Shown here piece by piece: positions 1 to 60,858 of a stretch of 64,000 nt of DNA. The notes under the pieces are model-generated. The model searched no databases. It worked only from the letters and a program-made list of their open reading frames with translations, and was not told the origin of the DNA. Position 1 is the stretch's first letter; each line of letters opens with the position of its first letter. The DNA is from Monocercomonoides exilis PA203 (lineage: Eukaryota; Protista; Preaxostyla): the NCBI GenBank assembly GCA_001643675.2, contig LSRY02000017.1:1364001-1428000 (forward strand). The letters are read 5' to 3'. The position numbers and the translations under genes are program-made.

Positions 1-975
1 AGAATCTATTCATTGATTATGCTATTTCAAACATTCTTGAGGAGATTTGTGAGCTGAAACAGAAATTTGAGCAAAATATGAAATATTTGATTTATTTGGA
101 AATTAAACATTTGCGACTTTTCAAAAAGAATAACCCTTATTAAATGTAAAAACAGTTTTCAGTATTTTAACTTGTGATTATCAATATTTTAGCCGGCAAT
201 TATGAACGATTCAAAAATTATGAAAAAAACAAAATAAAAAATACTATTTAACAAAAAAATAAATATGATAACGAAGATGTTGACTAAAATAGATATGAAT
301 TTAATGTGCAAATACCGAAATGTGTTTTCGAAAATTTTTATTTTTCAATTAACAATTTCCATCTTGAATTATTTTGAATGCTTGAAAGAAATTCAATATT
401 ATTACAATATTGGAAAGAAAAAATTTTCCTCACAGAAGGAAAAAGACGAACAATCTGAGAAATTAATAATACTTAAAAAACTTGGAAAAATATTGACTCA
501 TTTTCAAAAGAATGTTGAATATGAAATAACAATATGTGATTTCATTTGCAAAAAATTCATTTGTTTTTATCACAAAGAATTAGCAACAACTTTTTAAGAC
601 TTGTTTGCATAAATTTCATGTTTTTAATCGTTGTAAATTATGTAACTTCACTTAAAATAGTGAATAATGTTTTTTATTTTCGAATCATAACAACTCATTT
701 TATCATTAAAAATATTAATGTGAATATTTTTTTTGATTCATGCAAAAAAAATTAAAAATAAATGATTTCTTTTTTAAAATTTAGATTTTGAATAAAAGAG
801 ACAATTTTTTGTTTTTATCACATCAAAAAATTGAAATATAAAATCGAACATGTTTGTTTTTTCTTTGTTGCCATATCATCCGAAAAAATTTTTAGAACTC
901 AACAAATATTTCGGAAATTGAGAGTTTCATTTTTATATTTATGGTTTTGAACAAAGAAAAATTATTATATGTAAA

Positions 976-37786: not shown

Positions 37787-39144
37787 TCATTCAAATTTGT
37801 CAAATTCATCTGAACTTTTATCAACATCTTTCAAAATTTCACTGAATGTTCTTTTCACTTTTTTCTCCAAAGGCAATTCTTCTTCTTCAATTTCCTTTTC
37901 TTTTTCAACATGGGTAATTATTTTTGAAATCATAACTTTTTTCGGGGTGATAACTTTTCTTGTGTTATAAGTCTTTGAGAAGAGATTTTGAATTCAAATG
38001 AAATATTCATAATATCTGTTTCAAAAACATATTTTCAAGCTGAAATAAAGAAAAGCATTTATTGGATTAGAAAGTTCTCTTTTCAGTGTTCATTTACGAA
38101 TATTCAGAAGAAATTTTCTAACCGAAATTTTTGACAATAAAAATAATTTCAAAAATAATTACCCACATTTTCTTCATTTTTTCATCTTGTGTTTTACATT
38201 ATCCTTATCCCATTCATCGAGAAGATTTTCTTTTGTAATTTCCTTTCCAAAAAACCCAAAACAAAGAGAATGTACTGGAATGAAGTGTTGAGAAGATTCA
38301 GGAATATTCTTAAGCACAAATCCAGAACCACAGCTGAGGGTTCCGCTTATGATGAAGGCATTTTTGATGACTGATAGGGTGAATGCGGTGTGAAGGGCTT
38401 GTGGCAACACATCTGCAGCAGCTGTTCTTTTGTCAGACGATGAGGTGGATGATGGAGAACTGTAATTGTTTGAAAGCTCCGACCTCAACACTGTTAATAA
38501 GCCTTTGTCCAGCTGCCGCGAAATGTGCGTTGTATGTGGAACGAAGGTGACGACGTCTTTTTCAGCTTCCTTGAACTGTCTCCATATCGATGGACCTGCT
38601 CGGGATGAGTGTGAGTCTGGGAGAAGATGGCAACGTTGAGTTTCATTTTAAATACATTATCTTCCTTCAATTGTGGAAGGCAGTAGAACTGGCGAGGTGA
38701 ATTCATAATTTAACGATCAATCCATCAACACATTTGTTTTCGACCAAATGTCAAGCAAAGATGTAAATAGCGATGTCAGTTCTTTAAAAGTGTTATGTCT
38801 GTCGACAACACGACAGATGAAAGCGAGAAGTCATCAACATAGATTCCACCAACAGGATTTGTATTCATCATCCATTCGGCAGTTTCTTTTGGATCCAAAT
38901 TGTTCATCAGGAGGATGAGCAATAACACTACGAAATAATGCTGGAATGCGAATCGTAGATTCATCGACGCTAATGATAAATACATCAGTGTATTAATTTT
39001 CTTCGAACAACGAATGTAATTTGGTGAACCCCGGCCAAAGAACTTTCTGGAAAGATGCTGAAAGTCTGTTAATATCAACTTGCTTTGGAAGCGATAACTT
39101 AATTTCGGATGAAGCTTTTCGAAGAAATGAACTGTCTCCAACAT
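37787..39144 (-). pseudogene. Decayed pogo/Tc5/Fot1-type DDE_1 transposase, interrupted by a MITE
   Basis: Hand translation of ~38625-38460 gives LLPDSHSSR...DVVTFVPHTTHISRQLDKGLLTVLR, matching the DDE_1 pattern LLLD.H.SH...LPPHTTH.LQPLD.G. Also IYVDDFSL upstream and ALHTAFTLSVIKNAFIISG downstream. Stops and frameshifts are present. Confidence 0.75.
37912..38164. mobile_element. MITE (253 bp), GGG...CCC ends, 4-bp TSD ACAT
   Basis: TIR GGGTAATTATTTTTGAAAT / ATTTCAAAAATAATTACCC (19 bp, perfect). ACAT at 37908-37911 and 38165-38168. Confidence 0.9.
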
Positions 39145-39148
39145 AATT

Positions 39149-39149
<1 letters not shown>

Positions 39150-39199
<50 letters not shown>
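39150..39199. repeat. poly(T) tract (50 nt)
   Basis: Directly visible. Confidence 0.9.
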
Positions 39200-39359
39200 C
39201 GGAAAAGTCATCGATGTCCAGTTTTCTGTTTTGATGAATCATTTCATTATTATCGATTTTTTGCAACATATCGTAAATTCATCACATTAAAAGAAACCAT
39301 TTCGTATCTGATATTGTTTATCTTCTTTGTTCATTTTTCAGTTTTTTATTTAACAAACT

Positions 39360-39617
39360 GGGTAATTATTTTTGAAATCATATATTTTTTCGGGGTGTAG
39401 ATTTTTCAAAGATTGTTTGTTTTTAGAAAGAAAATTTTGATTCAAAAGAGAAAAAGCATGATAATTGTTTTTAAAAAACAAATATTTATACCGAATAAAA
39501 GATTATAATGTCTTCAATAAGCCTTTTCACTTTTCAACGTTCATATGTTAATATTCAAGATATATTTTAGGACCGAAAATTATTTTTGAAAAAATATGAT
39601 TTTAAAAATAATCTCCC
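39360..39617. mobile_element. Second, diverged copy of the same MITE (258 bp), 4-bp TSD AACT
   Basis: Starts GGGTAATTATTTTTGAAATCATA...TTCGGGGTG like copy 1 and ends ATGATTTTAAAAATAATCTCCC. AACT at 39356-39359 and 39618-39621. Confidence 0.88.
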
Positions 39618-39852
39618 AACTATTGTGATGAACAATTAAAAAAATCAAATGTTGAGTTTTCCAAATAAACACTCACACTTCCAACTTTTCAAATCGAACA
39701 ATATATATTTCAAATGATATCACCATTTTTTTGAAAACATTTTATTTGACAAAAAAGCAGTTCTGTTTTGGAATTTTTTTTTTGAAAATAATTTTTATTC
39801 AAAAACTTTACCGAAAAAATAAAAGCTATATCCAGGAATGGTAAATAAAAGG

Positions 39853-39855
<3 letters not shown>

Positions 39856-39913
<58 letters not shown>
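39856..39913. repeat. poly(A) tract (58 nt)
   Basis: Directly visible. Confidence 0.9.
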
Positions 39914-39915
<2 letters not shown>

Positions 39916-40348
39916 AAATTAAATTAAAATTAAAAAACAGACAGAAATTTGTTTTTATCGATTATTTATTGATTCTCAAAAAATATCAAATTTGAATGAT
40001 AGAATTTCATGTTCATAATTTGAAATGTTGTTCATAAATCTTGACTCAGACATCTTTGTACGAAAACATTTATGCTTAACAACATTATCTACAAATAATT
40101 ACAACAGCTATAATTTGTCATAATCAAATAACAGAGTTGCATCAACGAAGGATCAAGCTTCGACTAATTATCATGAGAAATATAATTTTTGAAGATCATC
40201 TTCCGAATTATTTCTATTAAAAATTTAACAATTTCTTTGATAAAATTGTATTTCTGAATTTCAGAAGAAAAAGCAAACAAAGGATACAAAAATACACAAC
40301 GCATTCTTCCATTGTTATTATTTCCATTCATATTGTTTTTCAGTTTTC

Positions 40349-43300
40349 ATGTTTTTGGTTAGCATTTGCTTTTTGCTGTCAGCTCTCAACTCTTCTGGTT
40401 TATGCAACATCGAATCAATTGAAGGGAATTACTCTTCAAAGTGTGCGATTGTGAAATCAGCTTGCAATGACCCTTTCAAAAGGAGAATTCAGTGTTCAAA
40501 TGGAGAAAATGCAAATCTGAATATTGTTTGGGAAAATCATAGAAGCACTCTTTCAACAACATTTTCATGCTGCAATTCATCAATCACTTTGAATATGCTG
40601 AACTTTGCTTCTTCGAATGTGAAAGGAAAAGATTGTGTGTTTTCCAATACAATCATCAATATCCGTGATTGCATTCTCGATAATGCACTTTTCAATAATC
40701 ATCCGTTTGCTTTGTCTGGTTGCACTGTAACTGCTTGCAACATAAGCTTGCCCTCCACAAAACACATGAACACTTTTTCAACGCAAACTTCTTTTCACCA
40801 TAGAAGGATACAATCAACCTCAAATTGCTCCGTTTTTATCTCCAAATCTTCATTTTCATCTTTCACAGACACTCCAGCATATGCATCTTTTGGCTGTGAT
40901 GCATCGATTGCATTATCAATTGATTCATGCAACTTTTATAATGTCACCTCAAGCATACTTTTTGTTCGAAAGCAAACACAAAGCAGTTGTGATGCATCTT
41001 TTTCAAATTGCGACTTTCTTCGTTCATCACTCCCACATCATGCAGATATTGATAAATATTCTCAAAGATGGAATTCATATTCCGCATCAAACTGCTCATT
41101 CTCAAAGTGGATTCCAGCCTCATATGCACATGAATACAATGAAAGTCAACAAATAACTTCAAATGATAATATTCTTTTCGATGACTGCCTATTCACTGGT
41201 GGTTCCACTTATGCCCTTTCTTTGAAAAATGCTACCAACATAACAATCCACAATTGCACATTTTCACAATGCAATAAAGGAGCCATTTCTTTGGATTCCG
41301 TTCAAAAGCTTGTCGTTGATCAATCAATGTTTTCCAACTGCTCAGCAGAAACATGTGGAGGAGCAATAATTTTCCATGAAGCATCAATGATTATGAATAA
41401 TTCACACACATATAACTGTAGTGCAAAAAGAAATGGAGGAGCAATACACGAGAATCGCGGAAGCACAGTTTCAATTGAAAGCAGTGTATTTCAAACTTGT
41501 TCTGATTGTGCAACTCTTGACAGATATGGTGGAGGGGCTTTATGGTTTGGTGATGGTGGACCGCACGTTGTGAGTGACTGTCAATTTCAAAACAATTCAA
41601 CTCCCATGAGAGGTGGCGCATTGATGTTCTCTTTCGACAGTGGGTATGCAGGGCCATTCACTTGCATGATCAAATTCTGCTATTTCGAGAACAATTCGGC
41701 TGGCATAGAAGGTCATGATGTGGCCATACTCAACAACTGGACATTAACTTTGAACAAAAATGCATTTGTTGAGTGCAGAACAATGACAAACAAATCTCTG
41801 AGAATGATTAACGGAACAATCGATGTGAGCGGCTGGATGGGCTTCGGATATTATGGTGCGATAAAGGTGAACAATAAAGAAGGAATGGATCACTTAGCAT
41901 GTGGATTCAACCAGAGGAAATGCAAGACAATATCCTTTTCAACAACTGCTCAAGGAAGCCAAGATGGAAGTCTGACAACAATTTCTGTCGATCCCTCCAC
42001 ATATCTCGAGACAAGTTGCACCATCGGCTCAAAGAACATCAAATTGACAAAATCTGGGAGTGAAGAAGTCACAGTAATTTCAGTTGTCACTTCTGACTCT
42101 TTGTTCACAATCACAACTGGAGCATTGACAATGACATCCTTCACTCTTGTGCACGACACAGCAATAACTTCGCTGAAAACCTCGCTTTTCTTTCTCTCAT
42201 CTTCAGGATCCTTGCATCTGCAAGAATGCATCATTCATGGAAACTCTTCCAGCTCTCAAGGTGCCCCACTTCAATCTTCCCTGTTTGTTCTGCAAGGAGG
42301 AAGCACATCAATTGAGTCCTCCACTCTGGCAGGCTTCTGGTTTGCAACAACACCAGCAATCTCTTTTTCCAATGAATGCTCTGTGAATCTGACAAATTCC
42401 TCAATCTCGGATATTTCCAGAATTAATGGCAACGGAGGAGGTATCGAAGGTATTGTTGGAGCAAATATGGTATTTGATGTTGAAGATTGCAAACTGAACA
42501 GATGTGGCTCCAATGGTGGTGATGGCGGTGGCATTTCATTGACCTTGTCAGATGAATCGTCATTCAACATGATTGAGTCATCCCTTGATGCAAATGAACA
42601 CACATTTGATTCTTGTTGTTCATCTGAGGATGATAATTGTGGTGGTCATGGGGGAGGACTGCATCTTTCCATCGCCCAAAGTGAAGCAAATGGGTTCAAG
42701 TTGAGCTCTCTGACTTTTCGCAACTGTGAAGCACTGAGAGGAGATGACTTGTTTGTGAGAGCATTTGATCTATCTGTCATCGCATTAAGCGAGAGACTCG
42801 AATTCAGTATCGACGAAAACAGCCTGACTTCTTTGGAAGGATATGAATCCTCAACAACCAACGACACTTATTCCATCCCGTTGATTTTGTATTTTCGAGT
42901 CTTTTCCGCTCCTGCTTGTGTTGCTGGAAAAGAAGGGCATGATTTCACTGTCTGTGGCTTCTCGGATTTCCCCTGCAGCACAGTCGAGTATGCACTTGAC
43001 TTGCACTTTAAAACCACGCCTGCCTCCATTTCCTTTCTTCGTTCATTTGTGCTGAACAGTCAGCTGATTCTCAAACAACAAGCAGTACATTTCAGCTCTG
43101 AGCCAGCCGGATCTTCAATTGGAATCTCATGCAATCAAGATGAAGTTTGCGCATGCGCTATCGAAACAAGAACAAAATGCCTTTTCGCTCAAATTTTGTT
43201 TTCTTTGAATTCATCCCTGAATGAGAATAGAGAATGTGTGTTTCATTGCTGCAATGAGTCCTTGTCATTCTCAGACTGCTCCTTCAGTGCTGATTCGGTT

Positions 43301-46300
43301 GTTGCTGCATCTCTTGTGATTGTATCAAACGGTTCTTTAGATGTTCAAAACATGACGATAAGTGTGACCGAATTTGGTGCTCGCCCTGCCTTTGTTGTTA
43401 GCGGAAATGATTCCAGCTTCACATGCAAAAACATCAAGTTGGAAAACGAGAAAACATCGTTTGAGTCAGCAGTCGTGGTGCTGACAGACAAATCATCACT
43501 TGAAATATCTGAATCAGTGATAAAAAATATAGCTTTGGTGCAAAACAGTGCCATTGAGATTGAAGATTCAACCAGTGCCACTGTTAAAAATACAACTTTC
43601 CACAACGTGAAAAAGCAGAGTGGAAGCGGAGGAACGATCTCTGGTGTTGCAGGATTGGAAAAGACTGTATCAGTTGAAAACTGTTCGTTCGAAAATTGCA
43701 AGTGCCAAGGCGCTGAAAATGCAAATGGAGGAGCATTGAGCATCGAAGCAAGCAAGGGAGGATTCTTCTCATTCACAGAATCCCACATCAACCAATGCAG
43801 CGTGAATAATACGAGCGGATTCGGAGGTGGATTGCTCATTACTCTTGGTGCAAACACAAATGCTGATTTCTTGCTGAAAGATTCTCTGTTTTCGAACAAC
43901 GAGGCAAAATACGGGAATGATGTGTATCTCATTTGCGACGATCTGAACTCTGCTGTTATACATACCAGATTTCAACTCACATTTCTCAATGAAGAAGGAG
44001 AGGCAATTGTGGAGTTGGCTGGACACGATAGAAATCGTTTTGTGGATGTTAACACAGACTTGCTAATATTCATCTTCCAGTTGAAATCAGACGTGGTTCA
44101 CATATCATCAGACAACGGATTTGAAATGATTGGCTGCGGGACTGCCAAGTATCCTTGTTCATCATTGTCAAAAGGATTTGCAAATATCGACGCTGATGCT
44201 GAACACAAAAAGTTGATAATTTGTGGTCAGTCTGTTGTTGACAGCTCCTATGTTGTCTCCAATTTCTCCATTGAATCAAACGCACAACAACAAGATGAAA
44301 CTGTCAAATCCTTTCTCATTTTTGAGGGTTCTGAAAACGATATTGCTGATGGCTGTTTCCATAACTCATTCGATCTGTCGCTCCAATTCATAAGCATTCT
44401 TCTTGATCTCTCTTTGTTGAATAAACAGGGCGTTATTGTGTCAACAAAATGGGGTGTTCTGTCTTTTGTCAGCTGCTCATTTGCCTCAAATTGCTCCGAA
44501 CTCTTCTCTCACATGCAATTGGTTGTTATCAAAAGTGGAACACTTTCAATTTCAGATATGTGCATAAATCAACTGAATTTGGACAAACCTCTGTTCGAGA
44601 TAAACAGTGGCTGTTTTTGCTCCATGTGCAGTATTGAGGCATCAGATCTTGCAGCAAACAGCGGAGTGCTTGAAATCATAAATGGAACTCAGGAAGATGC
44701 AAATGGAGCGAGTGAAATAAAAATGATTGGTTCCTCATTTCAGAATGTTTCATGCAGCAAAGATGGTGGTGCGGTTTTCTCCTGTTCTCCGATGAGCTCT
44801 TCAGCCTTGTTGATCGATAATTCCAGCTTCGACATTTGCAGAGCTGACATGTCTGAAAGAGGCGGAATGATGCTTCAATGCCTGAATCAAGATCGCAGAT
44901 TCGAGATGAACAACAGCCAAATAACAAACTGCGGGTGCTCCGTTGTTTCGGGCAAAGGTGGCGGAGTGCATCTGATCGTTGAAGGAAAGTTGTCACCAAA
45001 CTTTGTATTCAAATCATGTGTTTTCAATGGAAACAGCGCTTGGAAAGGCAGAGACATCTTTGTCGAATGCTGGAGCATCTCAGACCAGATCAATGAGTTC
45101 CAGTTCCAGATGGATCTTCGACCCGATGCTTACAACCGCTTCGACGCCATCTTTGGTTCAGATGCTGCACATGACTCTCCTGTGGATCTGATTGAATATG
45201 TGACAATATACCAGCACAGCACAATCGTCATCTCTTCTTTGCCTGCCAGCAATGGTGTGAATGGACGCCAGTGCGGCAAAGCAACCCTTCCCTGCGAGAC
45301 TTTTGGTTATGGTCTGAGGCATCTTATTATTGATTATTCTTCACGCTTGGTGGTTGACACATGCACCAAAATCGAATGCGAATGCAACATCTCCGATGTG
45401 GAGATAAAGTCCAAAATCAAAGAGAAAGCAAATCTCACCTTTGAAGCAGGAATTGCAAAAACTCGTGGTTATCTGCTTTCTGTTGGCAACAATTCCATTT
45501 TCAACAATCTTCGATTCATTTGTCTTTCCGTACATGCACTTCCATATCTTTCATTGTTTTTCATAAATTCAGGGTGCATTTATTTTGCATCTTGTGAGGT
45601 TTCTGGTGAAAGAGGCGGTGAATCTTCTTGGCCAACTGCGTTTAAACTGACCTCAAGTGAGCTGGTGATCGATGATTTTAAGATTGTTAATTTGGAGTGC
45701 CTCAGTCTCTTCGAATGCAATGATGGAAAGCTGTCGATAAGAGGAGTGAATGTTGAAGAGACAAAAACTTCAAAATGTTCCATTCTTTTGAGAAATACAA
45801 TTTGCAAAATCGAAAAATTGAATATTCTTAATTGTGACACTCACGAAGGACCATTTGCAGATGTTGATTGCAGTCCTTTCAACCAAGAAACGAAGGAAAG
45901 TGATGCACTCTCCTTTTCGCTGTCAAGCTTCTCAAACATCTCTTTGTCAAGTTGTTCTTCATGCATGTGCTTCGACTCTATTTCTGAACCCATCGAGCTG
46001 CTCAACTGCTCTTTTTCAGAGCCTGATAATTGCGCTCCGAAACTTGGAAGCGTTGCAACTTTCTCAAATTGTTCAAGCATCATTGCTCAATCATGCAGTG
46101 CAGAAGGAAATATAATTTCATATTCAAACATCAAGAACAATGAGGATATCTCAGATTATTGCATATACCAATGGAATTCTTCGATGCTTCATTTCAGACG
46201 CTGTTCTGCAACCATGTCAGACACCACGCTGGCAAATTCTTCAATTGGAGGTCTATCAGTTTCTGATGCGCACATCGCAATAGCTGATTCGAAGTTTGTT

Positions 46301-48166
46301 GAGAACAATCCAAGACTGAAGAAATATCCATCTCTTCGAAGAAACATGCTTTGCAATGACAATGGAATCCTTCACATCAACAGCCTCAAGGGCGGAGATG
46401 GTTCACAAAACGATTCTTCTCTTTGGATTCTCAACTCGGGATGCATCTTGTCTGGCATCCCCTCTGCAAGACTCTCTCCACTGTTTGTTCCTTCTCTTTT
46501 CTCTGTGACTTCCTCCAGCAGCGCCAACCAGACGACCCTCATTTTCACAGGATTTCTCCTTCTTCCATGCAACTTAACTTTCCAGCTCATCTCCAAAGTC
46601 GGAAACCTCGAGATGACCGAGAACGAGGAATTCAGCCTGGATGGATATGTGTCGGAAAACGAAGTCCATGCAATGATTGATTCCTCCTTTCTGAACAATG
46701 CAGGGGATGAAGCAGAAGTCTCGGTGCGCATCCTGTTCGGCAGCACTGATTCTCCATCACAAACAGAGGCATTCATCCTGAAGAACAAAACAGATTCGAA
46801 GATTGATGATGAAGCGAAGGTTGCAAAAGGAGCAAATGGCTCAACTCCTTCTTTAACACTGATAATTATTGTTCTTTTCGCTGTTTTGTTTTTGATTGTT
46901 CTTATTGTTGCAATCGCCTTTATTGTTCGTTGGAAAAAACAAAAGAGGAGAACAGAAGAATTGGAGGTGATTGTGGAAGACACAGTGAAAAAGGATCCGA
47001 AGGTATTTGAAATGGTGACAATGGAGATGTCTCCCGAGGAACAGTGGAAAAGAGCTGAGAGAGAGGCAGAGAAGAAGAACGAAGAGAGGATCCAGAAGAG
47101 GGTGTATGCGAAAAGTTTGGGACATTCAGAATCATCAGAGCATCTTCTATCTGAGAGTGGATCAACAGAATATATCCTAGGGAAAGATTCAGACAAGATC
47201 CCTGATTGGGCATTAGAAAAGGAGGAGGAGGAAGAGATAAGAAAGCAGACTCCATCTCCATCCACTTCATCCACTTCAACAACCGATTCAGATTCAACTT
47301 TTGTTCGATCAGAGAGTCTGTGCCCTACAACCTCATCCATGTCGAATCTGGTGGATGCAATGGCCTGCTCATCCCCTCATGAGAAGCTGATTGTGGACTT
47401 AAGGGATTCGCTTTTCATGCTGCTTCATGGAAGGAACGAGAAGAAAGAAATGGCTATTGGAAGCTTGAAGGAGAGGGAGCAGACAGCTTCCCAAATCCTG
47501 TTCTGGGTGGCGAATGGGGCACTCCACTCATTTGACGAAATGGAAAACCCTCTTTCCTCTTTGGCCAATCTCAGCCCCCACATTGTGTTGTTCTCTGAAC
47601 ATATGGTCATCTGCATTGTGATGCACTCTGACTTATCATCTGACGATGATTCTGATTCATCCTCGATATCTTCATCGACTGTTGTTTCTTCTGCTAGTGA
47701 TGATGATGATGATTCTTTGCCATCATCAGCCTTTGAGGAGGAGGATGATTTCAAAAAAGAGTGTCTAAGGTGGAAGGCGCCTGAGTTGCTGATCAACAAG
47801 AAGATGGGAGCGACAAAGAAGTCGGTTGTGTTCTCGATTGGGATGATGGCGTGGGAGTGTCTGACGCTTCAGATCCCGTTTGGGGAGTATGAGGCAGAGG
47901 TAGCAGGGCAGAAGATTATCAACGGGGAGAAGATGTGTCTGAACAGCATCCACCAATCATCGTTGGCTGCTGTTGCCACAAAGTGTGTGGCATCCCAGTG
48001 GAGAGATAGGCCCGGACTTGACCAACTCAAGCGCGAATTCATTCAGCACTTCCCACCTGGCGCAGCCATCCTCACCATGTCTGATGCCGTCGCCTGCGCT
48101 CCTGCAAGCCGATGCGCTTCTGGATATGAAACAAATGTCACTCTCGATGCTTGCATGGGCAACTAG
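40349..48166 (+). CDS. Intronless 2,605-aa type I surface protein: signal peptide, Cys-rich beta-helix (Pmp/pectin-lyase-like GGA(I/L) repeats), one TM, C-terminal pseudokinase
   Basis: Repeated GGAI/GGAL/GGGI and FxxN motifs; TM LIIIVLFAVLFLIVLIVAIAFIV followed by RWKKQKRR; kinase C-lobe remnants RWKAPELL, VFSIGMMAWECLTLQIPF and RP. Confidence 0.85.
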   Translation: MFLVSICFLLSALNSSGLCNIESIEGNYSSKCAIVKSACNDPFKRRIQCSNGENANLNIVWENHRSTLSTTFSCCNSSITLNMLNFASSNVKGKDCVFSNTIINIRDCILDNALFNNHPFALSGCTVTACNISLPSTKHMNTFSTQTSFHHRRIQSTSNCSVFISKSSFSSFTDTPAYASFGCDASIALSIDSCNFYNVTSSILFVRKQTQSSCDASFSNCDFLRSSLPHHADIDKYSQRWNSYSASNCSFSKWIPASYAHEYNESQQITSNDNILFDDCLFTGGSTYALSLKNATNITIHNCTFSQCNKGAISLDSVQKLVVDQSMFSNCSAETCGGAIIFHEASMIMNNSHTYNCSAKRNGGAIHENRGSTVSIESSVFQTCSDCATLDRYGGGALWFGDGGPHVVSDCQFQNNSTPMRGGALMFSFDSGYAGPFTCMIKFCYFENNSAGIEGHDVAILNNWTLTLNKNAFVECRTMTNKSLRMINGTIDVSGWMGFGYYGAIKVNNKEGMDHLACGFNQRKCKTISFSTTAQGSQDGSLTTISVDPSTYLETSCTIGSKNIKLTKSGSEEVTVISVVTSDSLFTITTGALTMTSFTLVHDTAITSLKTSLFFLSSSGSLHLQECIIHGNSSSSQGAPLQSSLFVLQGGSTSIESSTLAGFWFATTPAISFSNECSVNLTNSSISDISRINGNGGGIEGIVGANMVFDVEDCKLNRCGSNGGDGGGISLTLSDESSFNMIESSLDANEHTFDSCCSSEDDNCGGHGGGLHLSIAQSEANGFKLSSLTFRNCEALRGDDLFVRAFDLSVIALSERLEFSIDENSLTSLEGYESSTTNDTYSIPLILYFRVFSAPACVAGKEGHDFTVCGFSDFPCSTVEYALDLHFKTTPASISFLRSFVLNSQLILKQQAVHFSSEPAGSSIGISCNQDEVCACAIETRTKCLFAQILFSLNSSLNENRECVFHCCNESLSFSDCSFSADSVVAASLVIVSNGSLDVQNMTISVTEFGARPAFVVSGNDSSFTCKNIKLENEKTSFESAVVVLTDKSSLEISESVIKNIALVQNSAIEIEDSTSATVKNTTFHNVKKQSGSGGTISGVAGLEKTVSVENCSFENCKCQGAENANGGALSIEASKGGFFSFTESHINQCSVNNTSGFGGGLLITLGANTNADFLLKDSLFSNNEAKYGNDVYLICDDLNSAVIHTRFQLTFLNEEGEAIVELAGHDRNRFVDVNTDLLIFIFQLKSDVVHISSDNGFEMIGCGTAKYPCSSLSKGFANIDADAEHKKLIICGQSVVDSSYVVSNFSIESNAQQQDETVKSFLIFEGSENDIADGCFHNSFDLSLQFISILLDLSLLNKQGVIVSTKWGVLSFVSCSFASNCSELFSHMQLVVIKSGTLSISDMCINQLNLDKPLFEINSGCFCSMCSIEASDLAANSGVLEIINGTQEDANGASEIKMIGSSFQNVSCSKDGGAVFSCSPMSSSALLIDNSSFDICRADMSERGGMMLQCLNQDRRFEMNNSQITNCGCSVVSGKGGGVHLIVEGKLSPNFVFKSCVFNGNSAWKGRDIFVECWSISDQINEFQFQMDLRPDAYNRFDAIFGSDAAHDSPVDLIEYVTIYQHSTIVISSLPASNGVNGRQCGKATLPCETFGYGLRHLIIDYSSRLVVDTCTKIECECNISDVEIKSKIKEKANLTFEAGIAKTRGYLLSVGNNSIFNNLRFICLSVHALPYLSLFFINSGCIYFASCEVSGERGGESSWPTAFKLTSSELVIDDFKIVNLECLSLFECNDGKLSIRGVNVEETKTSKCSILLRNTICKIEKLNILNCDTHEGPFADVDCSPFNQETKESDALSFSLSSFSNISLSSCSSCMCFDSISEPIELLNCSFSEPDNCAPKLGSVATFSNCSSIIAQSCSAEGNIISYSNIKNNEDISDYCIYQWNSSMLHFRRCSATMSDTTLANSSIGGLSVSDAHIAIADSKFVENNPRLKKYPSLRRNMLCNDNGILHINSLKGGDGSQNDSSLWILNSGCILSGIPSARLSPLFVPSLFSVTSSSSANQTTLIFTGFLLLPCNLTFQLISKVGNLEMTENEEFSLDGYVSENEVHAMIDSSFLNNAGDEAEVSVRILFGSTDSPSQTEAFILKNKTDSKIDDEAKVAKGANGSTPSLTLIIIVLFAVLFLIVLIVAIAFIVRWKKQKRRTEELEVIVEDTVKKDPKVFEMVTMEMSPEEQWKRAEREAEKKNEERIQKRVYAKSLGHSESSEHLLSESGSTEYILGKDSDKIPDWALEKEEEEEIRKQTPSPSTSSTSTTDSDSTFVRSESLCPTTSSMSNLVDAMACSSPHEKLIVDLRDSLFMLLHGRNEKKEMAIGSLKEREQTASQILFWVANGALHSFDEMENPLSSLANLSPHIVLFSEHMVICIVMHSDLSSDDDSDSSSISSSTVVSSASDDDDDSLPSSAFEEEDDFKKECLRWKAPELLINKKMGATKKSVVFSIGMMAWECLTLQIPFGEYEAEVAGQKIINGEKMCLNSIHQSSLAAVATKCVASQWRDRPGLDQLKREFIQHFPPGAAILTMSDAVACAPASRCASGYETNVTLDACMGN

Positions 48167-51100: not shown

Positions 51101-51641
51101 TTTCCTTCATAGTTCATTAATATTTTGATTTCAGTATTTTTCAGTTTATCGCTTGTCAATAATGATATTTATGAGGATTTCACCTGATATTTGATTCGTT
51201 TTCTTCTGTATCTATTTGTTGCATATTTTGTACATTCTATTGTCCATTGAAGTATTGCAATTTATTCTTGTTCCATTTTGTAGTAATTTGGTATTTAATA
51301 ATTTGTTGCTTCTCCATTCCATTTTCTCTTAATAAATATCACATTTCTTATTAACAAATTTTGATTGATTATAAAATGCTATCGTCATTCTAATTTATCT
51401 ATAAAAATGAAATCAATAATTATGAACGATTATGGATTTTGTAAAAAAATGTGTTTTCAAGTTAAAATAAAGAAAAAAATTATTTTCTTGATAAAAATTG
51501 CCAATTTATCAATGATTGATTTTTTTCAATAGAGTAATTGGAATGCATAAAAAACACATTTATTAATTCTTGTCTGTTATTTTGAATATGTCTATCACGT
51601 TCTTTATAACCATTATAAAGCTATGTGAAATATCCTTTTTT

Positions 51642-52473
51642 ATGAATATATTTTTTTGGATAAATTTAATTGCTGTTTTGCATTCTACATGCGTGTATGA
51701 AAAAGATGGAAAAGAGCCAGAAATTGGAGAATGTTCTGGGCCAACTGAAAGGGTTCTTGCAGCTCGTAATGCAACAAATCAACTTAATGAAGGATGTCCT
51801 TTAGGTGTGAAATTAGTTCATTGTTTTATATCTATCATCCGATATTTTTAGGTACTGTGCCTTTTTTTCTCGATGGACAGGAATCTGAAACGGTGAAAGT
51901 GTGAATTAAATTGATTAGAAAAGATTATTATTTTTTTTAAGTGTGGCCAATGCAAGCCAGGAGTCGGGGGCATGGGGCTTGAAAATGCATATTGCTCGTA
52001 TAATGAATATTGTACGGATGAAGGGAAATGCTCATCAATAACTTTGCATCCTGTTTTCGGAAAAGAATGTCCATATTTTGATTTCATGAAAACAGTCGAT
52101 TTCTGTGGTGGAGGGATGGAATGCATTCAGCATAAATGCTTGCAATGTCAAGACGGTGAAATACAAGCTGAAAGAGGACTTGTTTGATTTGTTCATTTTC
52201 AATTTTCTTTTTATTCTTTTTAATTTCAGATTTGCTACAAAGGCGTTTGGACAAAAAGCAAATTAATAAGTGTAATTACAGAACCTAATAATCTTTTCTT
52301 GGGAATCATATCCTTTGTTTTTGTGTGTCTTAATTAAATTTTTTCGATCACATGATTGTCTTATTTCAAAAAATTAGTTGTTTGAGTTTTTTATTCAGAT
52401 TGTATCTCGCATTCATAAAGTCTGTTCCAAGGATGATATTTTAAAAGTTAAAAAGAAATCAAAAATAAGTTGA
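51642..52473 (+). CDS. Small Cys-rich type I membrane protein, multi-exon
   Basis: Signal-like MNIFFWINLIAVLHS, then spliced Cys-rich exons (CGQCKPG...YCSYNEYCTDEGKC...CGGGMECIQHKCLQCQDG), a TM-like LFLGIISFVF and a basic tail. The last exon is tentative. Confidence 0.6.
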
Positions 52474-52654
52474 TTCTCAAAGAATAAATAATACGTGTAT
52501 TATTTTTATGATTTTTCAATAAGACATAAAGTTCTCGAAATTTTGAATAGTAATAACAATATTTCTTTAAATATAAAGTATTTGAAACGAAAATAAATAA
52601 ATTGTTTGGAGAGATCAATTTGATCTATATTCACTCAATTATAAAGAACGTAAT

Positions 52655-53400
52655 ATGTCAGCAACTGTTTTGCGTAGGATCCAGATTGTTTGGAAATTTC
52701 ATTTGCACTATTTCTTTTTACAGATTCTGTTATATTAAAAGGAAATTAATCGTTTTTCAACGGACCCAGTTGAGGGTATTCGAATTGCACCACATGAGGA
52801 TAATATTAGATATATAGACGCATTTATCAAAGGTCCAATGGGTTCTCCTTACGAAGGAGGAGAATTTAAGCTTGAAATATTTCTGAGAGATGGCTATCCA
52901 ATGGAGCCTCCTCTTGTGCGCTTTTTAACACCTGTTTATCATCCAAATATTGATAAATTAGGGCGCATTTGCTTGGACACCCTGAAAGATGCATGGACTC
53001 CAGCAATACAGATACGAACTATGCTCATGAGTGTTCAAGTTCGATTTCCCACTAAATTTTTTAATAAATAAATTATTTGTTATTTCAATGAAATACTTTA
53101 TGTATTGAATTTATAGGCTCTTATGAGTACACCAAATCTTGACGGTATGATATTAATAGTGTTTTGTCTTTTATTTTTGAAATTCTTATTCTATTTTTAA
53201 AAGATCCATTAAATGAAGTTGCTGCAAAGCACTGGAAGCGCGACAAAGCATCCGCAGAAGCAGAAGGTATTATTCTTTGATTTTTCTTAGGAAATTTTTT
53301 GATTATTTATAATGACATGCTTCTTTCATGATTTATATGAACAATTTTTTTTTTTACACCAGCAAAACGGCTGACTGCTCTTCATGCGAGAGCAAAATAA
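52655..53400 (+). CDS. UBE2N: E2 ubiquitin-conjugating enzyme Ubc13, 5 exons
   Basis: [15 protein letters not shown]...YPMEPP...[14 protein letters not shown]...QIRT...PNLD|DPLN...WK. Spliced end [12 protein letters not shown] at TAA 53398-53400. Confidence 0.88.
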
Positions 53401-55599
53401 ATGAAAATGTTATTCTTACATTTGGCAAATAACATGTTAATTTAACAATGAAGTATTGATGATTTTGAAATTTTTCTTTATTTATTTTTCTTATGACATC
53501 TCATCTGACTTAAAAAATCCAGTAAATTAAAAAAATCTTTCAATTTTTGATAAAACGAACTTTTATAATCTGAAAATTGAATTTTGAAAGTTCGGAATTT
53601 GAATAATCTTTGTTTGATGTGTTTTGAACATAAATAATTATTTTATTTAGGATTATTTGTACAAATTAATAATAAATTAATTTCGAATTTTTTTTTTACT
53701 CAAGAAGTTAGCATCTTCTTTGAAAAATAAAAATAACAAATTTTTTTTAAAATGACCGACAGCAACAAAAAATGGTAAGTCGTGTCGCATAGGTCTGGTG
53801 TATGTGTTTGTTAAATTCCTCATTGAAAATAAAAAAATATTTTTTTATATTTTGAAAACTGATGGCACAATTGTTTTTTCTGTTATTGCTTCAACAAAAA
53901 AATTTTTTTTGATATAAAAATAATTTTCACTTAATTTATTTAAGATAAACATTTCGTATTCGTGAAAAAATCGACTTTTGTTTTAAACTTTGTTAGTTGG
54001 ATATCATTTTAAATTTAACATTTTTTCAAAAAAAAAAAAAAAGAAAGAAAAACAATGAATAAAATATGACAGAATTGTTCGAATATTTTATGTGGAACAA
54101 ATTCCATTAAATCTGAATTTTATTCCATTCGCATTTCATTTTCATCACATTATTTTCACTTTCTTATTTATAATTTTGATTTCAATGTTAACAATGTTTG
54201 ATGAAATTAAAGTCATTTGGAGGGAAATGAGAATAAGACCAAATGAGAATAATGGATTGAACCAATAGTGAGTTTATTCATAAAATGGAAATATGAAAAT
54301 AAGAAAGTGATTATTTGATTCCTAATAATGTCCTAATTTTTTTGAAAAGTTCATTTTGTTCAATTTTCCAAATAAATAAAAATTTCATATTTTGATCAAA
54401 TATCTGTTTTCACTAACGAAACTTCACTTTAATAGATGAAATAACTTGATAATGCTATCATAGACTTTTCTGTGATATTTCGTGAGTGGAAACAGTTAAT
54501 TGATGAAAATATGAAGTTTATTTTTTATTTGAAAATTGAACAAAAGGAAGTTTTCAAAAAAAATATGCTACAGATATCGCACAAAATACCGGACAATATG
54601 GGTCATTATTTTTCATATCGTAACTTTGTTCGAAGAAAGATCTTTTTTTTATTAATTGTGGTAAAAAGAGAAAAAGGCAAAAATACATATTTATAAATGA
54701 ATAGAAAAAGAATCGTGATCGAATTTTAGCAAACCAAGTTAATCTGTGAAAATTGTGAAAATTCCATTATAACATTTAATTTTTGAGTTATTTCTTTTAT
54801 TTGAATTATATGGAATTATGAAGGTTAACAGGCTCAATTATCACTTATAAAAGATTTCAATTTGAGTATGATTCAAGGAAATAACTTTTTTTAATGCTTC
54901 GAATTAACTTTCGTTTGAAAATGAATGATTGATTGATTTATTAAATTTAGAAGCGAAATTGTGAGGTTTATAATTTTGTATTATATTTTTTTTTAACTTT
55001 ATTTATGTTATGAATGACGCACATTCGATTTTTGTCGAATAGAGTTGTTCGTGAGATGCAAATTATATTGGAAAATAAATGTTTTGTTTATTGAATGATT
55101 TAACAAGAAGTGGAATAAAAATGAAGTCAAATCATAATTATTGTATGTTAACATTTCGAACAATTGAGATAAAATGTTAAAAGTGACCTCAATGTTTTGT
55201 AAAGAAATTATTTTATTTTTCATTGTTTTTTGTTTTTTCTTCATTTCAAACATTGGACTTTATTGTTTTAATTGAAAAGTTTTTCGTTTATGAAATTTCC
55301 ACTTCATTTATCTTGATGAGATTATGCATTTATCTTTCCAGTTGTGAGATCAACATGTTTTTGATATATTTTATAGAAGAACTTGCTAAACATAACACAA
55401 TAATTTGATTTCTCATTAAATATATAATTAACTTTAGCAATTCCAAAATATTTATTTCTATTTTCCAGTGCAAAGGTGAAATGAAGAAAAAGATAAAACA
55501 AAAAAAAAAGTGAGGAAAATTACGTGAAATCAATAAATGAGAAAAAGAATCCATCTTTTGCTAAGCTTCGTTTTATTTACATGCATAAGGAGAATTTAT

Positions 55600-56810
55600 T
55601 GTTTCTATTCAGTCTGCTCCAGAAACATGAAAAGTTGACAAAAAAAACCTTCCCCCATCACAATATGTTTTGCATTTCTGGAACTCGCAGCCGCTGATCC
55701 AGACACACGAAGTAATACAATAAGCTACATCCCTCCTCCAGTATGATTTTGAGCAGTACATCCATCGAACGAGTTGTTTTCGATTTTGATTGAATTAATT
55801 GAATTGCACATAATTCCTCCACCATAAGCATATGAATAGCAGTTGTTGAATGAACAAAATTTCACTGAAAGTGTTCCCGATCCAAGGTTATACATGTGAA
55901 TCGCCCCTCTACTTGATATTCCATCTGAGACAGAATATTGATTTTCAGTTGTAATTGACCCATTCCACACGCACCAAGTGAATGAATTCGCCCCATTGTC
56001 TGCAATCTGCTGTCTCCCTGGTTTCGATGGATTCCCTTCACTCCCGCTGACTGCAACATTCTGAGACCGATAGCACATGACAAACGAGGTGTTCGAGGCA
56101 TCCAAGGAAGATGAGGGGCTGTTGAGCGAGGAGACAATGCCCCATCATACACATCCCACACTGATACAAATTCACACCCACTCATCAGAAATGATGTTTG
56201 GCCCAACCCTTCACCCAGATGTGTTGTTTTCTGTGGATCTGTGGAGATGTTGAAGAAGGTCAGCTGCGTGAGAGATACAAGGGGTGTCAGGGGAGGCGCC
56301 AGAAACGGGGCTGAAGACACACAAAAAGATGAGAAATGAATCTCACTCACCAATACATTCCCTCCTCCTTCGCTTTCTTCTTCTCTTCCTTCTCCTCTTC
56401 CTTCTCTACCTCTTCTTCCTCCACCTTCTTGTTGTCCTCCTCTCCCTCCTCCTTCATCTCTTCCTCCTCCAATTCCTCCTCCACCTTCTCTCTCACTCTT
56501 CGTCAGCCCCATCATCCCCTCTCCTCCAAACAGTCTCCCACACACATTTCCTCCCCTTCCAACCCCCCTAAGCGTGATGTTCCAAAACACCCCTCTGCAC
56601 CCGCCCAGCTCAAACACCCCCGCCTCCTTGCCTCTCCCCATCTCCACACCACATCCCCTCACCACAACCACACTCCCCCTCATTCCACACACAATCCTCC
56701 CAATTTCATCTCCAATCAGCTCAATCCCCTTCAACTCAACCATCATGCTCCATAACTCCCTCACAAAAAAATACTCATCTTCTTCCTTTTTCCAACTTTT
56801 TTTCAAATTT
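55600..56810 (-). pseudogene. Captured, frameshifted fragment of a beta-helix surface-protein gene (transposon cargo)
   Basis: ORF 55862-56806 (SFLMSGCEFVSVWDVYDG) shifts frame into ORF 55725-56105 (ASNTSFVMCYR...RGAIHM...SVKFCSFNNC...GGGI...GGGM*), then a premature TAG. Confidence 0.75.
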
Positions 56811-57699
56811 CTCTAAAAAATCATATCTCTGATTTTCCCCTTCCCTTCTTTCTTCGCCTTATTCAAATTTTCTCTTTCAATCGAACTTCCAAAATATTAT
56901 CTTCTTCTTCTCAATCATATGCCAAATTTCTTCTTTTGCTGTATCATCTATTCCTTGATCTCATTTTCGGCTTTTAATAAGATTCACCGTAAATGTCTTC
57001 CAAAACCATCAAAAAAATATCTTCTTCTCTTTTCCTTTCATTTATATTTTGCGCCCGCTCACTCCACCAAACGCCTTCCAATTATTATATCCTGATTTCT
57101 TTTAATGCATCCAATATCCCCATCTTCTCATATTCCTTGTTCATTCGTTGTCGTTGAACGTTCTTGCAAAAATCCTAGTTTCACAAAAAAATAATATTTG
57201 AAAAAACATAATTAAAAAAAATATAAATACACACCGTTATAATGATCATTCTTCACCGACTTCATTCTCCTCCCCCAAATATTTCCTTTCTGCCTATAAA
57301 TTCCATCTTTCCAGCCTTCGCTTCCCTTCTGCTTCCTCAAAAAACATTAATCAGCTAAAGCCCAACTTCTTGTTGCTTCTTCTCAAATAACCTCCACAAA
57401 CCCTTTTCTTAAAAATATCGAAGGGGAAGATGAAGATGAAGAAGCAGATGAATTAGAGGAGAGCTCAGACTTTTCGAAGTCCATGAAGGCGAAAATGATA
57501 ATAACCAAGAAGAAGATTTCACATAAAAATATTTTCTTTTGTTGTGGTGGTGCAAACGAAAACATGATGGTGATAATGACGGTGAAGAAGAAAATGAGGA
57601 GCATGAGGAAGATGTGGAAGATGAAGAAGGCGAAGAAATGATGTGACAAACAATTCTTTTCGCAATTCAATCATATTTCATAAGATCTTGAACATCCCC

Positions 57700-58550
57700 C
57701 AAAACATCCCATTTCCACAGCTCACTTAAAACTCTTCACAAAATCTCATTCCCAAATGTTATGCCTGATCCTTCCATCCAAATCATTTCATTCGGCCATC
57801 CACTGCTCATTCCTCTGCCTTTTCTTCGCCATTGCCCTCCCCTTTCCCCTCACAATTCCAGAGCGATGGCTGCTCTCAGTTTCTTGTCTTTGCTATTCTC
57901 CTCCTCCATCCACCTCACAATATTCTCCGAAAACAACACCCCTCTCCTTTTATTCATCTTTCTCGCCCTCTTCCAGAAATTCCTTCCCCTCCTCTTTCCC
58001 TTCTCATCCTCCACACAGCCTGTCCTCACCATTCCCCTTTCCATCGCTTCTCCGCTCCATCGCCTCTCTGGTGAACGGCTTCTCCCATCGCAGCAGTCTT
58101 CTCCTGAAAGTCCTCTCGCCCTTTGAAGACACACCAAACAAAATGGCTGCGCCTCCAACACACAGCCCGATAATCCATCTGCCAACAAGATGGAGGGCAA
58201 TGATCAGCTGCGCGAGGCTATCCTGACAAGAGATACAGAAGCGGAGGCGGCGAGCATCCAGTCGGAGATGCTTGGCCAGTCGCTCCTGCGGAAACCGCTC
58301 CACAACTACCCTATGCACAATCTGCTGTTGTTGTTGTTGCTGCTGCCATCGCTTGGCAAAGAAGAGCTGCCTGTGTTCTTCAGACACCACCCGATGGATG
58401 TGACTGCAGCGTTGCAATGGTGTTGGTGCGGCAGAGGAGAAGAGAAGAGAAGAGATGAGATGAGATGAGATGATGTGCAGTTGCACTCGATTAGCTGAGA
58501 GTTCAATGGCTGTGCAGTGTCTGCTGCAGCTGAATTCTTTAAAAACAAAC
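57700..58550 (-). pseudogene. Second decayed GC-rich gene fragment inside the transposon, possibly from the surface-protein family
   Basis: One frame with scattered stops reads NAAVTSIGWCLKNTGSSSL...ASASVSLVRIASRS*SLPSILLADGLSGCVLE. Coding-like composition but no intact gene. Confidence 0.4.
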
Positions 58551-60858
58551 CAAAGAAGAAGAAGAAGAAGAAGGCGAAGAAGAAAAAAAGAAAGAAAATG
58601 GTTGCGATGAAGTTAAAGGCATCAACGAACGTGGTGGCATCACCTGTTTTGTCTCTACGGGATTAAGTCCGAGTGCTTCGCAGCTCCTTCATTCCTTTGC
58701 AGCCGTCCTTCTAAAGCTCCTCCTTTCCATCGCTCTCTCACACAACCCATTCCTGCTTTTCTATTTTCGTTCCTCTTCCTGCCGCGGCAACGCCTCAAAG
58801 CACCTGTCGGAGTCTTCATCATTCTCTCAGGAATCCCCTTCAACTTTGCCTCCTTCTCCATTTAGAATACAGCTTTCCCTTTTCATATGCATCCCTTACT
58901 TTCCCCGCCTAGTGCTTAAATGTTTTCAGCCTCTGCTTCTTTCATTTCTGCTTCACATTTCTCGAAAGATGCTAACAAAACAAACAAATATACAAATCAA
59001 CAAATACATAAATAGTAAAATAAATGAATGAATATACAAAATTACACATATATCTAATTGTTGATTACCTTCTGAATTTTTCTTCTTTGTTAATCCATTT
59101 GACCAAATAGCTAATATAACATCAAATAGTACGAAGGCTTCATTTTTCTTTTTTTTTTTAAATAAAAATCTTCAAAGCTTCTTTCGAACAACTCTATTCG
59201 ACAAAAATCGAATGTGCGTCATTCATAACATAAATAAAGTTAAAAAAAAATATAATACAAAATTATAAACCTCACAATTTCGCTTCTAAATTTAATAAAT
59301 CAATCAATCATTCATTTTCAAACGAAAGTTAATTCGAAGCATTAAAAAAAGTTATTTCCTTGAATCATACTCAAATTGAAATCTTTTATAAGTGATAATT
59401 GAGCCTGTTAACCTTCATAATTCCATATAATTCAAATAAAAGAAATAACTCAAAAATTAAATGTTATAATGGAATTTTCACAATTTTCACAGATTAACTT
59501 GGTTTGCTAAAATTCGATCACGATTCTTTTTCTATTCATTTATAAATATGTATTTTTGCCTTTTTCTCTTTTTACCACAATTAATAAAAAAAAGATCTTT
59601 CTTCGAACAAAGTTACGATATGAAAAATAATGACCCATATCGATTTCACAATAGCTGCAAGAGGAATAATTCTATTAATTTTCCTCTAAATATATCTCAT
59701 CAATACTTACTCATTTGATAAACAAAACTTTCACAATAGCCACATTTGTGCTCAGAAAAATTTATTTTTTAAATCTCGGAGAAACTTTTTATCCTTATTC
59801 TCCTGGAATCAAATAATTATTTTTTCTGAGCACAAACGAAGCTGTTTAGAAAGTCTCGTTTATCAAATGAGTTTGTATTAATGAGATATATTTTAAGGAA
59901 ATTTTTCAGAATTATACCTCTTGCGGTTATTGAGAAATCGATCTTGTCCGGTATTTTGTGCAATGTCCGGTATTTTATGCGATATCTGTATATCTCAAAA
60001 AAACAACTATTTTGTGAAAAAGTTCCTGAATAAACTATTTTCAAATTTATTTCAAAAATAATAATTATTTTTTGAGTTTTTTTGTCTTTGTCATTTTGAT
60101 GATTTTTTTTTTGTGCAACTGAGAAACAATGATGAAATCAATAAACAAAATGATATGGGGCAAAACATTTCGCATCAGGCATTTTCATTGAAAAATTATG
60201 GATCTTTGATGAACTTTTTGTAATCAAAAAAATACAAAAAAAATGGGTTTCTTTATTGAAACAAATGTGAAATCCCATAACATTTTTATGTTATGTCAAC
60301 GATGCTTGTATGCAGTTATGAAAATCAAATTTGTTTTGAAATCCAAGTGAGTTTTATAATGTTATGAGAAAAACAATTTTTTCGTTCTTTGTGCAAAAAA
60401 AGCTTGAAAGTCCGTATTTTCCCCCATATAATAGATGATTCCTTCTCATTGAACTGTGACAAAAGCTCTATGTCCTCCTTACGTTGATGAAAATATACAA
60501 ATTGACCCCCCTGACAGAAATAATTTTTTGATAATTTTTAAAATAGTTGCTTTGCTTTATTTTCTTGTGAAAGTGAAAATAGAATATTTCCATCAAGTTT
60601 TCTTTTCAACTCACAAAATTTCACCATCATGGAAACAGTTTCATTGTCAATGGTTTGTTTCTTTAATGGTGGAATTTGGTGAGTTTGTATGAAAAATTGA
60701 TGAAATTTTTGAATTTTCATTTTTTCCTAAAAATGAGACAAAAGGAACTTTTCAAAAAAATCACACATATTTGTTATTCTTTCTTTAAAGAAAAGAGTGT
60801 TTAATTTTTTGATTCATTTGTTTTTTGTATTTTTTCTAGAATTTATGCATTCTGTTTA

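Follow-up and report, generated by a model that had tools for sequence, protein, structure and literature searches.

What kind of transposon can leave, side by side, two insertions of about 255 bp and one of about 5 kb carrying a piece of a host gene, and give all three the same ends? The question is raised by a 64,000-nucleotide stretch of the Monocercomonoides exilis genome (contig C11:1364001-1428000; assembly of 82,301,135 bases in 101 contigs), referred to here as the window. Two of the insertions are MITEs (miniature inverted-repeat transposable elements). MITE 1 (253 bp, 37912..38164, plus strand) has tips reading GGGTAATTATTTTTGAAAT... and 22-bp terminal inverted repeats (TIRs), and it is bordered by ACAT at 37908..37911 and again at 38165..38168. 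Its two ends are asymmetric, with the subterminal motif TTTCGG present at two differing spacings. MITE 2 (258 bp, 39360..39617, plus strand) belongs to the same family, is 69% identical to MITE 1, and lies between two copies of AACT (39356..39359 and 39618..39621); its right tip is degenerate (AAAAATAATCTCCC, two mismatches; GGGAGATTATTTTT when read inward). The third insertion is a nonautonomous element of 5,037 bp (54600..59636) with tips GGGTCATTATTTTTCATATCG, bordered by ATAT at 54596..54599 and 59637..59640. An earlier note on this DNA had assigned the three to one transposon lineage, possibly Sola-like, with 4-bp A-N-N-T target site duplications (TSDs). The coordinates it gave are all correct on reading the window, and each flanking repeat is perfect. 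The answer favored here, at a probability of roughly 85%, is that the lineage consists of Sola2-type cut-and-paste DNA transposons from a clade close to the elements of dictyostelids.

Do the shared ends hold up beyond the window? The terminal 14-mer GGGTMATTATTTTT occurs five times in the window at one mismatch or fewer, against 0.07 expected from shuffled sequence. In the 82-Mb genome the exact 14-mer is found 242 times, versus 4 times for the reversed control. A-N-N-T stands directly before the tip in 225 of the 242 ends (93%); 14 of the remainder have a base other than A at position -4, and 3 have the A at -4 but not a T at -1. Among 100 listed A-N-N-T ends, the flanking 4-mer is ATAT in 56, ATTT/AAAT in 27, ATGT/ACAT in 8, AACT/AGTT in 4, and something else in 5, so that 84 of the 100 are A-W-W-T. 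Complete copies tell the same story: the 4-bp flanks are identical in 20 of the 21 that were read, the exception being a one-base mismatch (ATAT/ATTT). The genome-wide tip search that had been suggested as a check thus bears out a single lineage with 4-bp A-N-N-T duplications.

The 5-kb copy cannot by itself distinguish TSD from TIR because ATAT is a palindrome, and a repeat finder indeed extends the arms of this element straight through its flanks (54596-55059 and 59177-59640). The matter is settled by nonpalindromic duplications at other complete copies (ATTT six times, ATGT twice, and AGTT, ACAT, and AACT) together with a comparison of empty and filled sites. The latter is possible since the element landed in another repeat, a foldback MITE of about 400 bp from an unrelated, highly abundant family (556 or more first-look candidates genome-wide). 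The two halves of this host repeat lie at 54570-54599 and 59641-59989, the insertion point being about 30 bp from its left end. In 17 intact paralogous arms at eight loci, the empty site reads ATACCGGACA-AGAT-CGATTTC in 16 cases and has AGGT in place of AGAT in 1. The filled site in the window reads ...GGACA-ATAT-(5,037 bp)-ATAT-CGATTTC. With a single 4-mer at the empty sites, the insertion amounts to the element plus four bases gained.

The lineage comes in three structural classes, namely MITEs, long-TIR carriers of a host gene fragment, and autonomous elements. The last are 12.5 to 18 kb long and have tips of the form GGGT(A/C)ATTATTTTT, with TIRs of 22 to 29 bp in eight copies. Five are GGGTC tipped (12.9 to 18 kb, 81 to 99% alike, each with matching duplications), and three are GGGTA tipped (16.2 kb, similar to one another at about 93%, with ATGT, ATTT, and ATAT as their duplications). 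A further GGGTA-tipped element, of 12.5 kb, lies on contig C13. One 17.8-kb copy (L007+L008, C1:2659132-2676920) consists of a 12.9-kb element with an insertion of about 5 kb within the transposase frame. The catalytic part of the transposase has at least 419 first-look candidate loci genome-wide. Seven of these are 81 to 100% identical to the query (the query itself being the 100%), about 45 are 51 to 59% identical, and many fall at 41 to 49%, often with intact frames of 1,000 to 1,300 codons. The subfamilies of the genome are 41 to 59% identical to one another in this part. The annotated "hypothetical proteins" MONOS_18616 and MONOS_12024 belong to the same transposase type.

The GGGTC-tipped elements share an open frame of 911 to 914 codons, the 914-codon frame being L001:2202-4946 on the minus strand, in the 12.9-kb element on contig C16 (L001+L002). 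It contains a USP/UCH domain (PF00443; E values of 2e-15 and 1.5e-16), with the USP Cys box (GNTCY) and His box (SGHFF) readable in the translation. An upstream frame (L001:5048-5383, minus strand) aligns by hhalign (85%, E value of 6e-6) to the part of the family profile that covers the N-terminal domain, and a downstream frame (L001:1885-2208, minus strand) continues into the C terminus found in MONOS_18616. Because the N- and C-terminal parts sit in separate frames, the transposase gene is read as spliced; its candidate exons were searched one by one. Its parts follow in the order conserved N-terminal domain, USP/UCH domain, CxxC zinc motif, and RNase-H-fold core. Compared with most relatives, the USP domain is an insertion that separates the N-terminal domain from the catalytic part. 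A USP domain is likewise encoded by the 16.2-kb family and by a paralogue further removed, so that at least three M. exilis subfamilies have one. USP/UCH is present in one of 31 sampled relatives. In a metagenomic relative its place is taken by OTU. One of the 16.2-kb USP-encoding elements has in addition a ubiquitin-family frame (L022:3424-4026, plus strand; PF00240, E value of 1.6e-13). It was rejected as an element gene on account of stop codons in both sister copies and is probably captured debris.

How is the C-terminal part recognized as a transposase core? Its 334 residues have no Pfam match (only noise at E values up to 10) and no sequence match in the PDB. An AlphaFold model of them, with a predicted local distance difference test score (pLDDT) of 75.5, has the order b1-b2-b3-a-b4-a-b5-a, which is that of an RNase-H fold, with b1 at 134-147, b4 at 217-223, b5 at 249-255, and a helix from 263. 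Foldseek with this core returned retroviral integrase cores, IstA, ISCth4, and Hermes at E values of about 4e-4, and Atlas models carrying DUF7869 match it at template modeling (TM) scores of 0.58 to 0.67. A profile search of 1.84 billion representative proteins gave 5,484 relatives at an E value of 1e-3 or better. Fifteen residues are invariant in 31 of these relatives: D73, C75, C78, H112, D140, K142, S189, D223, H227, F228, H259, G260, K261, D265, and F268. The glutamate two residues before HGK (E257) is common in the relatives but not invariant, whereas D265 is invariant and starts the helix following b5; 42 residues separate the second and third aspartates, with no insertion domain between them. 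The core is accordingly best read as having a D-D-D triad, and in the alignment and model the catalytic residues are likely D140, D223, and D265, in the motifs DFKEN, DxGPHF, and HGKxxxD.

The Sola superfamily, in the 2009 work of Bao et al., is said to combine DDD chemistry with 4-bp duplications. Within it, dictyostelid Sola2 elements are 10.3 to 15.3 kb long, with TIRs of 12 to 22 bp and AT-rich 4-bp AWWT duplications such as ATAT, AAAT, and ATTT (Bao & Jurka 2013, PMC3627910). The DFa elements have the tips 5'-GAGCATTTATTT and GAATATTTATTT, that is, 5'-GAG/GAA, and the PPa elements have different ones, TGTTAAATTTT (PMC3627910); a GRG-type tip is thus not universal in Sola2. The transposases of Sola2_DFa-2 and Sola2_PPa-1 read NRTDxCPxC, DFKENI.LG, FW.D...HFKS, and YHGKS..D.HF (PMC3627910), and, compared by eye and without an E value, neither printed sequence lacks any of the 15 invariant residues, whose relative spacing is the same. 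In the core of Sola2-1_HM, the D-to-D spacing is 84 and the D-to-HG spacing is 35 (Majorek 2014, PMC3985635); the corresponding values in M. exilis are 83 and 36. The M. exilis elements resemble Sola2 in their AT-rich 4-bp duplication, in short TIRs with GRG-type tips, and in a predicted D-D-D core lacking an insertion domain. The earlier, tentative suggestion of a Sola-like element, made from GRG ends and 4-bp TSDs, holds up: the autonomous copies encode a DDD transposase whose residues follow the pattern of published Sola2 transposases, and AWWT duplications and 5'-GAG/GAA starts are features of published Sola2 elements.

Where do the small elements come from? The 253- to 258-bp MITE type, with 22- to 23-bp TIRs and asymmetric ends, includes both MITEs of the window and has at least 1,060 first-look candidates, of which 40 were scored and proved 68 to 94% identical. 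MITE 1 aligns to the 12.5-kb transposase-bearing element over its left 140 bp and over its right 79 bp. MITE 2 matches the left end of that element (L025+L026 101-12611; C13:1308793-1321303) at 81% identity over bases 1-182 and the right end of the same element at 76% over bases 180-258. By these alignments, the MITEs of the window are classical internal-deletion derivatives, with the GGGTA-tipped 12.5-kb autonomous element as their putative parent. Two candidates for the right end of this element lie in tandem, 175 bp from each other, and its boundary is provisional. A second MITE type, of 240 bp, is a foldback with arms of about 95 bp, the type copies being L018 and L019.

The 5-kb element represents the third class. 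Its left TIR (54600..55059, plus strand) and right TIR (59177..59636, minus strand) are 460 bp each and 99.3% identical, and its interior holds a captured host gene fragment of 126 codons (55725..56105, minus strand) and GC-rich low-complexity sequence. Relatives of 3.8 to 6.2 kb at seven other loci have the same ends and the same fragment, and no transposase was found in any of these elements or in the 5-kb copy. These carriers have arms of 416 to 474 bp, and there are 71 first-look TIR candidates of the kind genome-wide. Within five of the seven elements (L011-L017) the arms are 96 to 99.8% identical, and between elements they are 72 to 83% identical; in one copy, L017, the two arms are of different types (76%). 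The pattern may reflect conversion between arms or a chimeric origin. The fragment derives from a host gene family with at least 1,402 first-look candidates, 58 to 82% identical, whose full genes have 2,000 to 4,400 codons. The fragment is surface-protein-like and has no Pfam match. Sister elements on C7 contain it as well, and on C15 and C21 it lies close to ends of the family. Since it is common to all sister copies examined, a single capture followed by amplification is indicated. On C42, N-terminal fragments of the same giant gene family form many inverted pairs about 4 to 5 kb apart, with frames of 400 to 750 codons; these may be further long-TIR carriers or a head-to-head gene array.

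Could these observations mean something else? One alternative concerns the length of the duplication. If only the middle two bases (NN) were duplicated, the flanking A...T would reflect a terminal T and A of the element itself (TGGGT...ACCCA) plus a target preference. By sequence alone this 2-bp duplication is inseparable from a 4-bp A-N-N-T duplication, and the filled and empty sites fit both models alike. The T at -1 is slightly better kept than the A at -4 (6 versus 14 exceptions among 242 ends), and TTAT/TAAT ends occur six times while partner-type ATAA/ATTA ends are absent among the exact tips. The gap between 14 and 6 is not significant, however (an estimate of about P = 0.1), and solo or mutated ends may make up many of the exceptions. 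In each of the 20 perfect pairs all four bases are duplicated, and the AWWT duplications of published Sola2 elements are likewise counted as 4 bp (PMC3627910). The 2-bp model is accordingly rated very unlikely. Less credible still, and close to negligible, is the idea that this transposase family never moved the 5-kb element, which would instead have arisen from host sequence by inverted segmental duplication and would end in the 14-mer by chance. Its interior is host derived, and it matches the GGGTC-tipped autonomous elements of 13 to 18 kb over no more than its 14 terminal bases. Against this, seven or more other copies with the same ends sit at unlinked loci, each within its own matching 4-bp A-N-N-T flanks; the element interrupts a MITE precisely, with a gain of 4 bp; and a chance match over 14 bases is very improbable, the control having 4 matches in 82 Mb.

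The remaining alternative is that the elements form a separate, unnamed DDD/DDE superfamily resembling Sola2 only in target site length and a few motifs. Several points weigh against the Sola2 assignment and the lineage drawn from it. The core has no direct Pfam match. The likeness to Sola2 transposases is a reading by eye of printed sequences, with no E value against a curated Sola2 model. The DFAEN and SHG motifs of the canonical Hydra Sola2 core occur in none of the 150 closest relatives, so that the lineage forms a distinct subclade. DUF7869 (PF25273) is a weak link: 3 of 31 relatives match it, at E values of 3e-4 or above. The element's own transposase scores no match at the PF25273 cutoff of 26 bits, and paralogues in the same genome, 39% identical (BLASTP E value of 1e-56), reach 27.9 bits in six-frame translation and 17.9 bits or nothing by hmmscan, so that the core is related to DUF7869 without being a scoring member. 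The putative parent of the MITEs has nonmatching flanks (AGCT and AAAT). Separately, a word-index protein search with the catalytic part returned no named dictyostelid or animal Sola2 protein among its 9 relatives, nor among the 3 and 5 from repeats of the search (alignment, P0007), which were already-known relatives or unnamed metagenome proteins, and short peptides of the printed Sola2 proteins are absent from 188 retrieved proteins. On the other side, the proteins that the Repbase curators name Sola2 transposases include dictyostelid ones showing the identical DFKEN / HFKS / YHGKSxxD pattern, the elements encoding them agree with those of M. exilis in size, length of TIR, duplications (AWWT), and tips (GAG/GAA), and the D-D-HG spacings are as in Sola2-1_HM. 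An unnamed superfamily is thus considered unlikely, and the Sola2 reading is retained.

Other known families were considered and rejected. For Kolobok and piggyBac, there is no TTAA among the 242 flanks listed, and the second and third acidic residues are 42 residues apart with no insertion domain (criterion from PMC9587614). Zator would require a duplication of 3 bp rather than 4; PF07592 is not matched and surfaced in a single Atlas cluster only, as a minority label (11%), and the printed Zator core has other motifs. Ginger1 and Ginger2 fit in duplication length (4 to 5 bp), but no match to rve (PF00665) is found at E values up to 10, and the likeness to integrase cores is at the level of fold only (E value of about 4e-4, TM score of 0.3). 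The 13- to 18-kb size suggested Maverick/Polinton, which is contradicted by the lack of polymerase and integrase and by a duplication of 4 bp rather than 6. Academ is set aside for want of XPG and helicase. The families excluded earlier (Tc1/mariner, piggyBac/Kolobok, hAT, MULE, and Harbinger) were excluded correctly.

How, then, would the elements move? The transposase would bind the element tips and probably also the subterminal TTTCGG motifs. The element would be excised and then integrated at A-W-W-T sites through cuts staggered by 4 bases, and repair of the stagger would produce the 4-bp duplication. The MITEs of the window would have been moved in trans, as presumably was the 5-kb element, by the GGGTC-type or a related transposase. 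The earlier note held that one transposase moves both. What survives of this claim is that the donors are related, the MITE and the long element not tracing to unrelated autonomous transposases. The part that calls for a single shared enzyme goes too far: several subfamilies exist, the MITEs come from a GGGTA-type element, and what the 5-kb element has in common with the GGGTC type is confined to the 14-nucleotide tips.

Why would a transposase contain a deubiquitinase domain? One tentative proposal, possible but given somewhat less than even odds, is that the predicted deubiquitinase is a functional, recurrent accessory of this Sola2 clade that shields the transposase from ubiquitin-dependent degradation or silencing. 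If so, it would help explain an expansion to at least 419 candidate transposase loci and roughly 1,000 candidate MITE loci. In the single literature collection searched, nothing was found on a DDD transposase with a USP domain. The arrangement makes it testable whether transposons tamper with host ubiquitin control.

Two further members of the lineage lie in the window, both of the 240-bp type. The right part of one is cut by the window start (1..136); it ends ...CAAAAAGAATAACCC and is 81 to 85% identical to the type copies L018 and L019. The other, at 54331..54569, is a degenerate foldback-type MITE with eroded tips, 70 to 74% identical to the type copies over 231 bp.

What do these elements add to the picture of the genome? 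Repeats make up 46% of M. exilis, and unclassified repeats make up 35% of the genome (Treitli et al. 2021, PMC8767320). The Sola2-type family is not described in that genome paper (PMC8767320) and may account for part of the unclassified fraction. It gives M. exilis a curatable class of DNA transposon, with autonomous elements of 12.5 to 18 kb, about 1,000 candidate MITE loci, and gene fragment carriers, and it allows many "hypothetical proteins," such as the two MONOS proteins named above, and copies of gene fragments to be flagged as transposon derived. It also extends the range of Sola2 to oxymonads, with relatives in Streblomastix. In its predicted mechanism and in target, tips, and size the family follows Sola2, and the host group is new. 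Unusual here are the USP domain in the transposase, the scale of diversification within one genome, and the long-TIR carriers of a host gene fragment.

The closest known systems are the dictyostelid Sola2 elements DFa-1/2/3 of Dictyostelium fasciculatum and PPa-1/4/5 of Polysphondylium pallidum. Like those of M. exilis, they are 10 to 15 kb long with short TIRs and AWWT duplications, and the DFa tip 5'-GAGCATTTATTT is similar to GGGTCATTATTT in M. exilis. The transposases share RTDxCxxC, DFKEN, DxxxHF(K/R), HGKxxxDxxF, and an N-terminal "...L..GF.....KHAKQ" block. The dictyostelid elements differ in carrying a Fanzor1 (TnpB-like) gene, which was not seen in the M. exilis elements. The latter, in turn, have the inserted USP/UCH domain, abundant MITEs, long-TIR gene fragment carriers, and a metamonad host. 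Sola2-1_HM of Hydra also has an RNase-H-fold core with no insertion domain and nearly the same spacings (84/35 versus 83/36), but its motifs are DFAEN, DGxxxQYKN, and SHG, compared with DFKEN, DxGPHFRN, and E.HGK in M. exilis. The motifs of Sola1 (DNCGGQNRN and ERGHT) and Sola3 (SDNASSYHGN and CRGKD) are further away than those of Hydra Sola2.

The carriers recall those of the Pack-MULE type in being nonautonomous, with long TIRs and a host gene fragment inside, and differ from them in having Sola2 tips and a 4-bp duplication where MULEs have one of 9 bp. For the protease domain there are also counterparts elsewhere. Some MULEs carry a ULP1 protease domain. Helitrons carry OTU and VTD deubiquitinase domains, presumed to shield the proteins of transposition against control by ubiquitin (Erven et al. 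2022, PMC9741609). What the M. exilis elements share with both is a ubiquitin-family protease domain within the transposon's own protein; what sets them apart is that the domain is of the USP/UCH class (PF00443) and sits inside a DDD cut-and-paste transposase.

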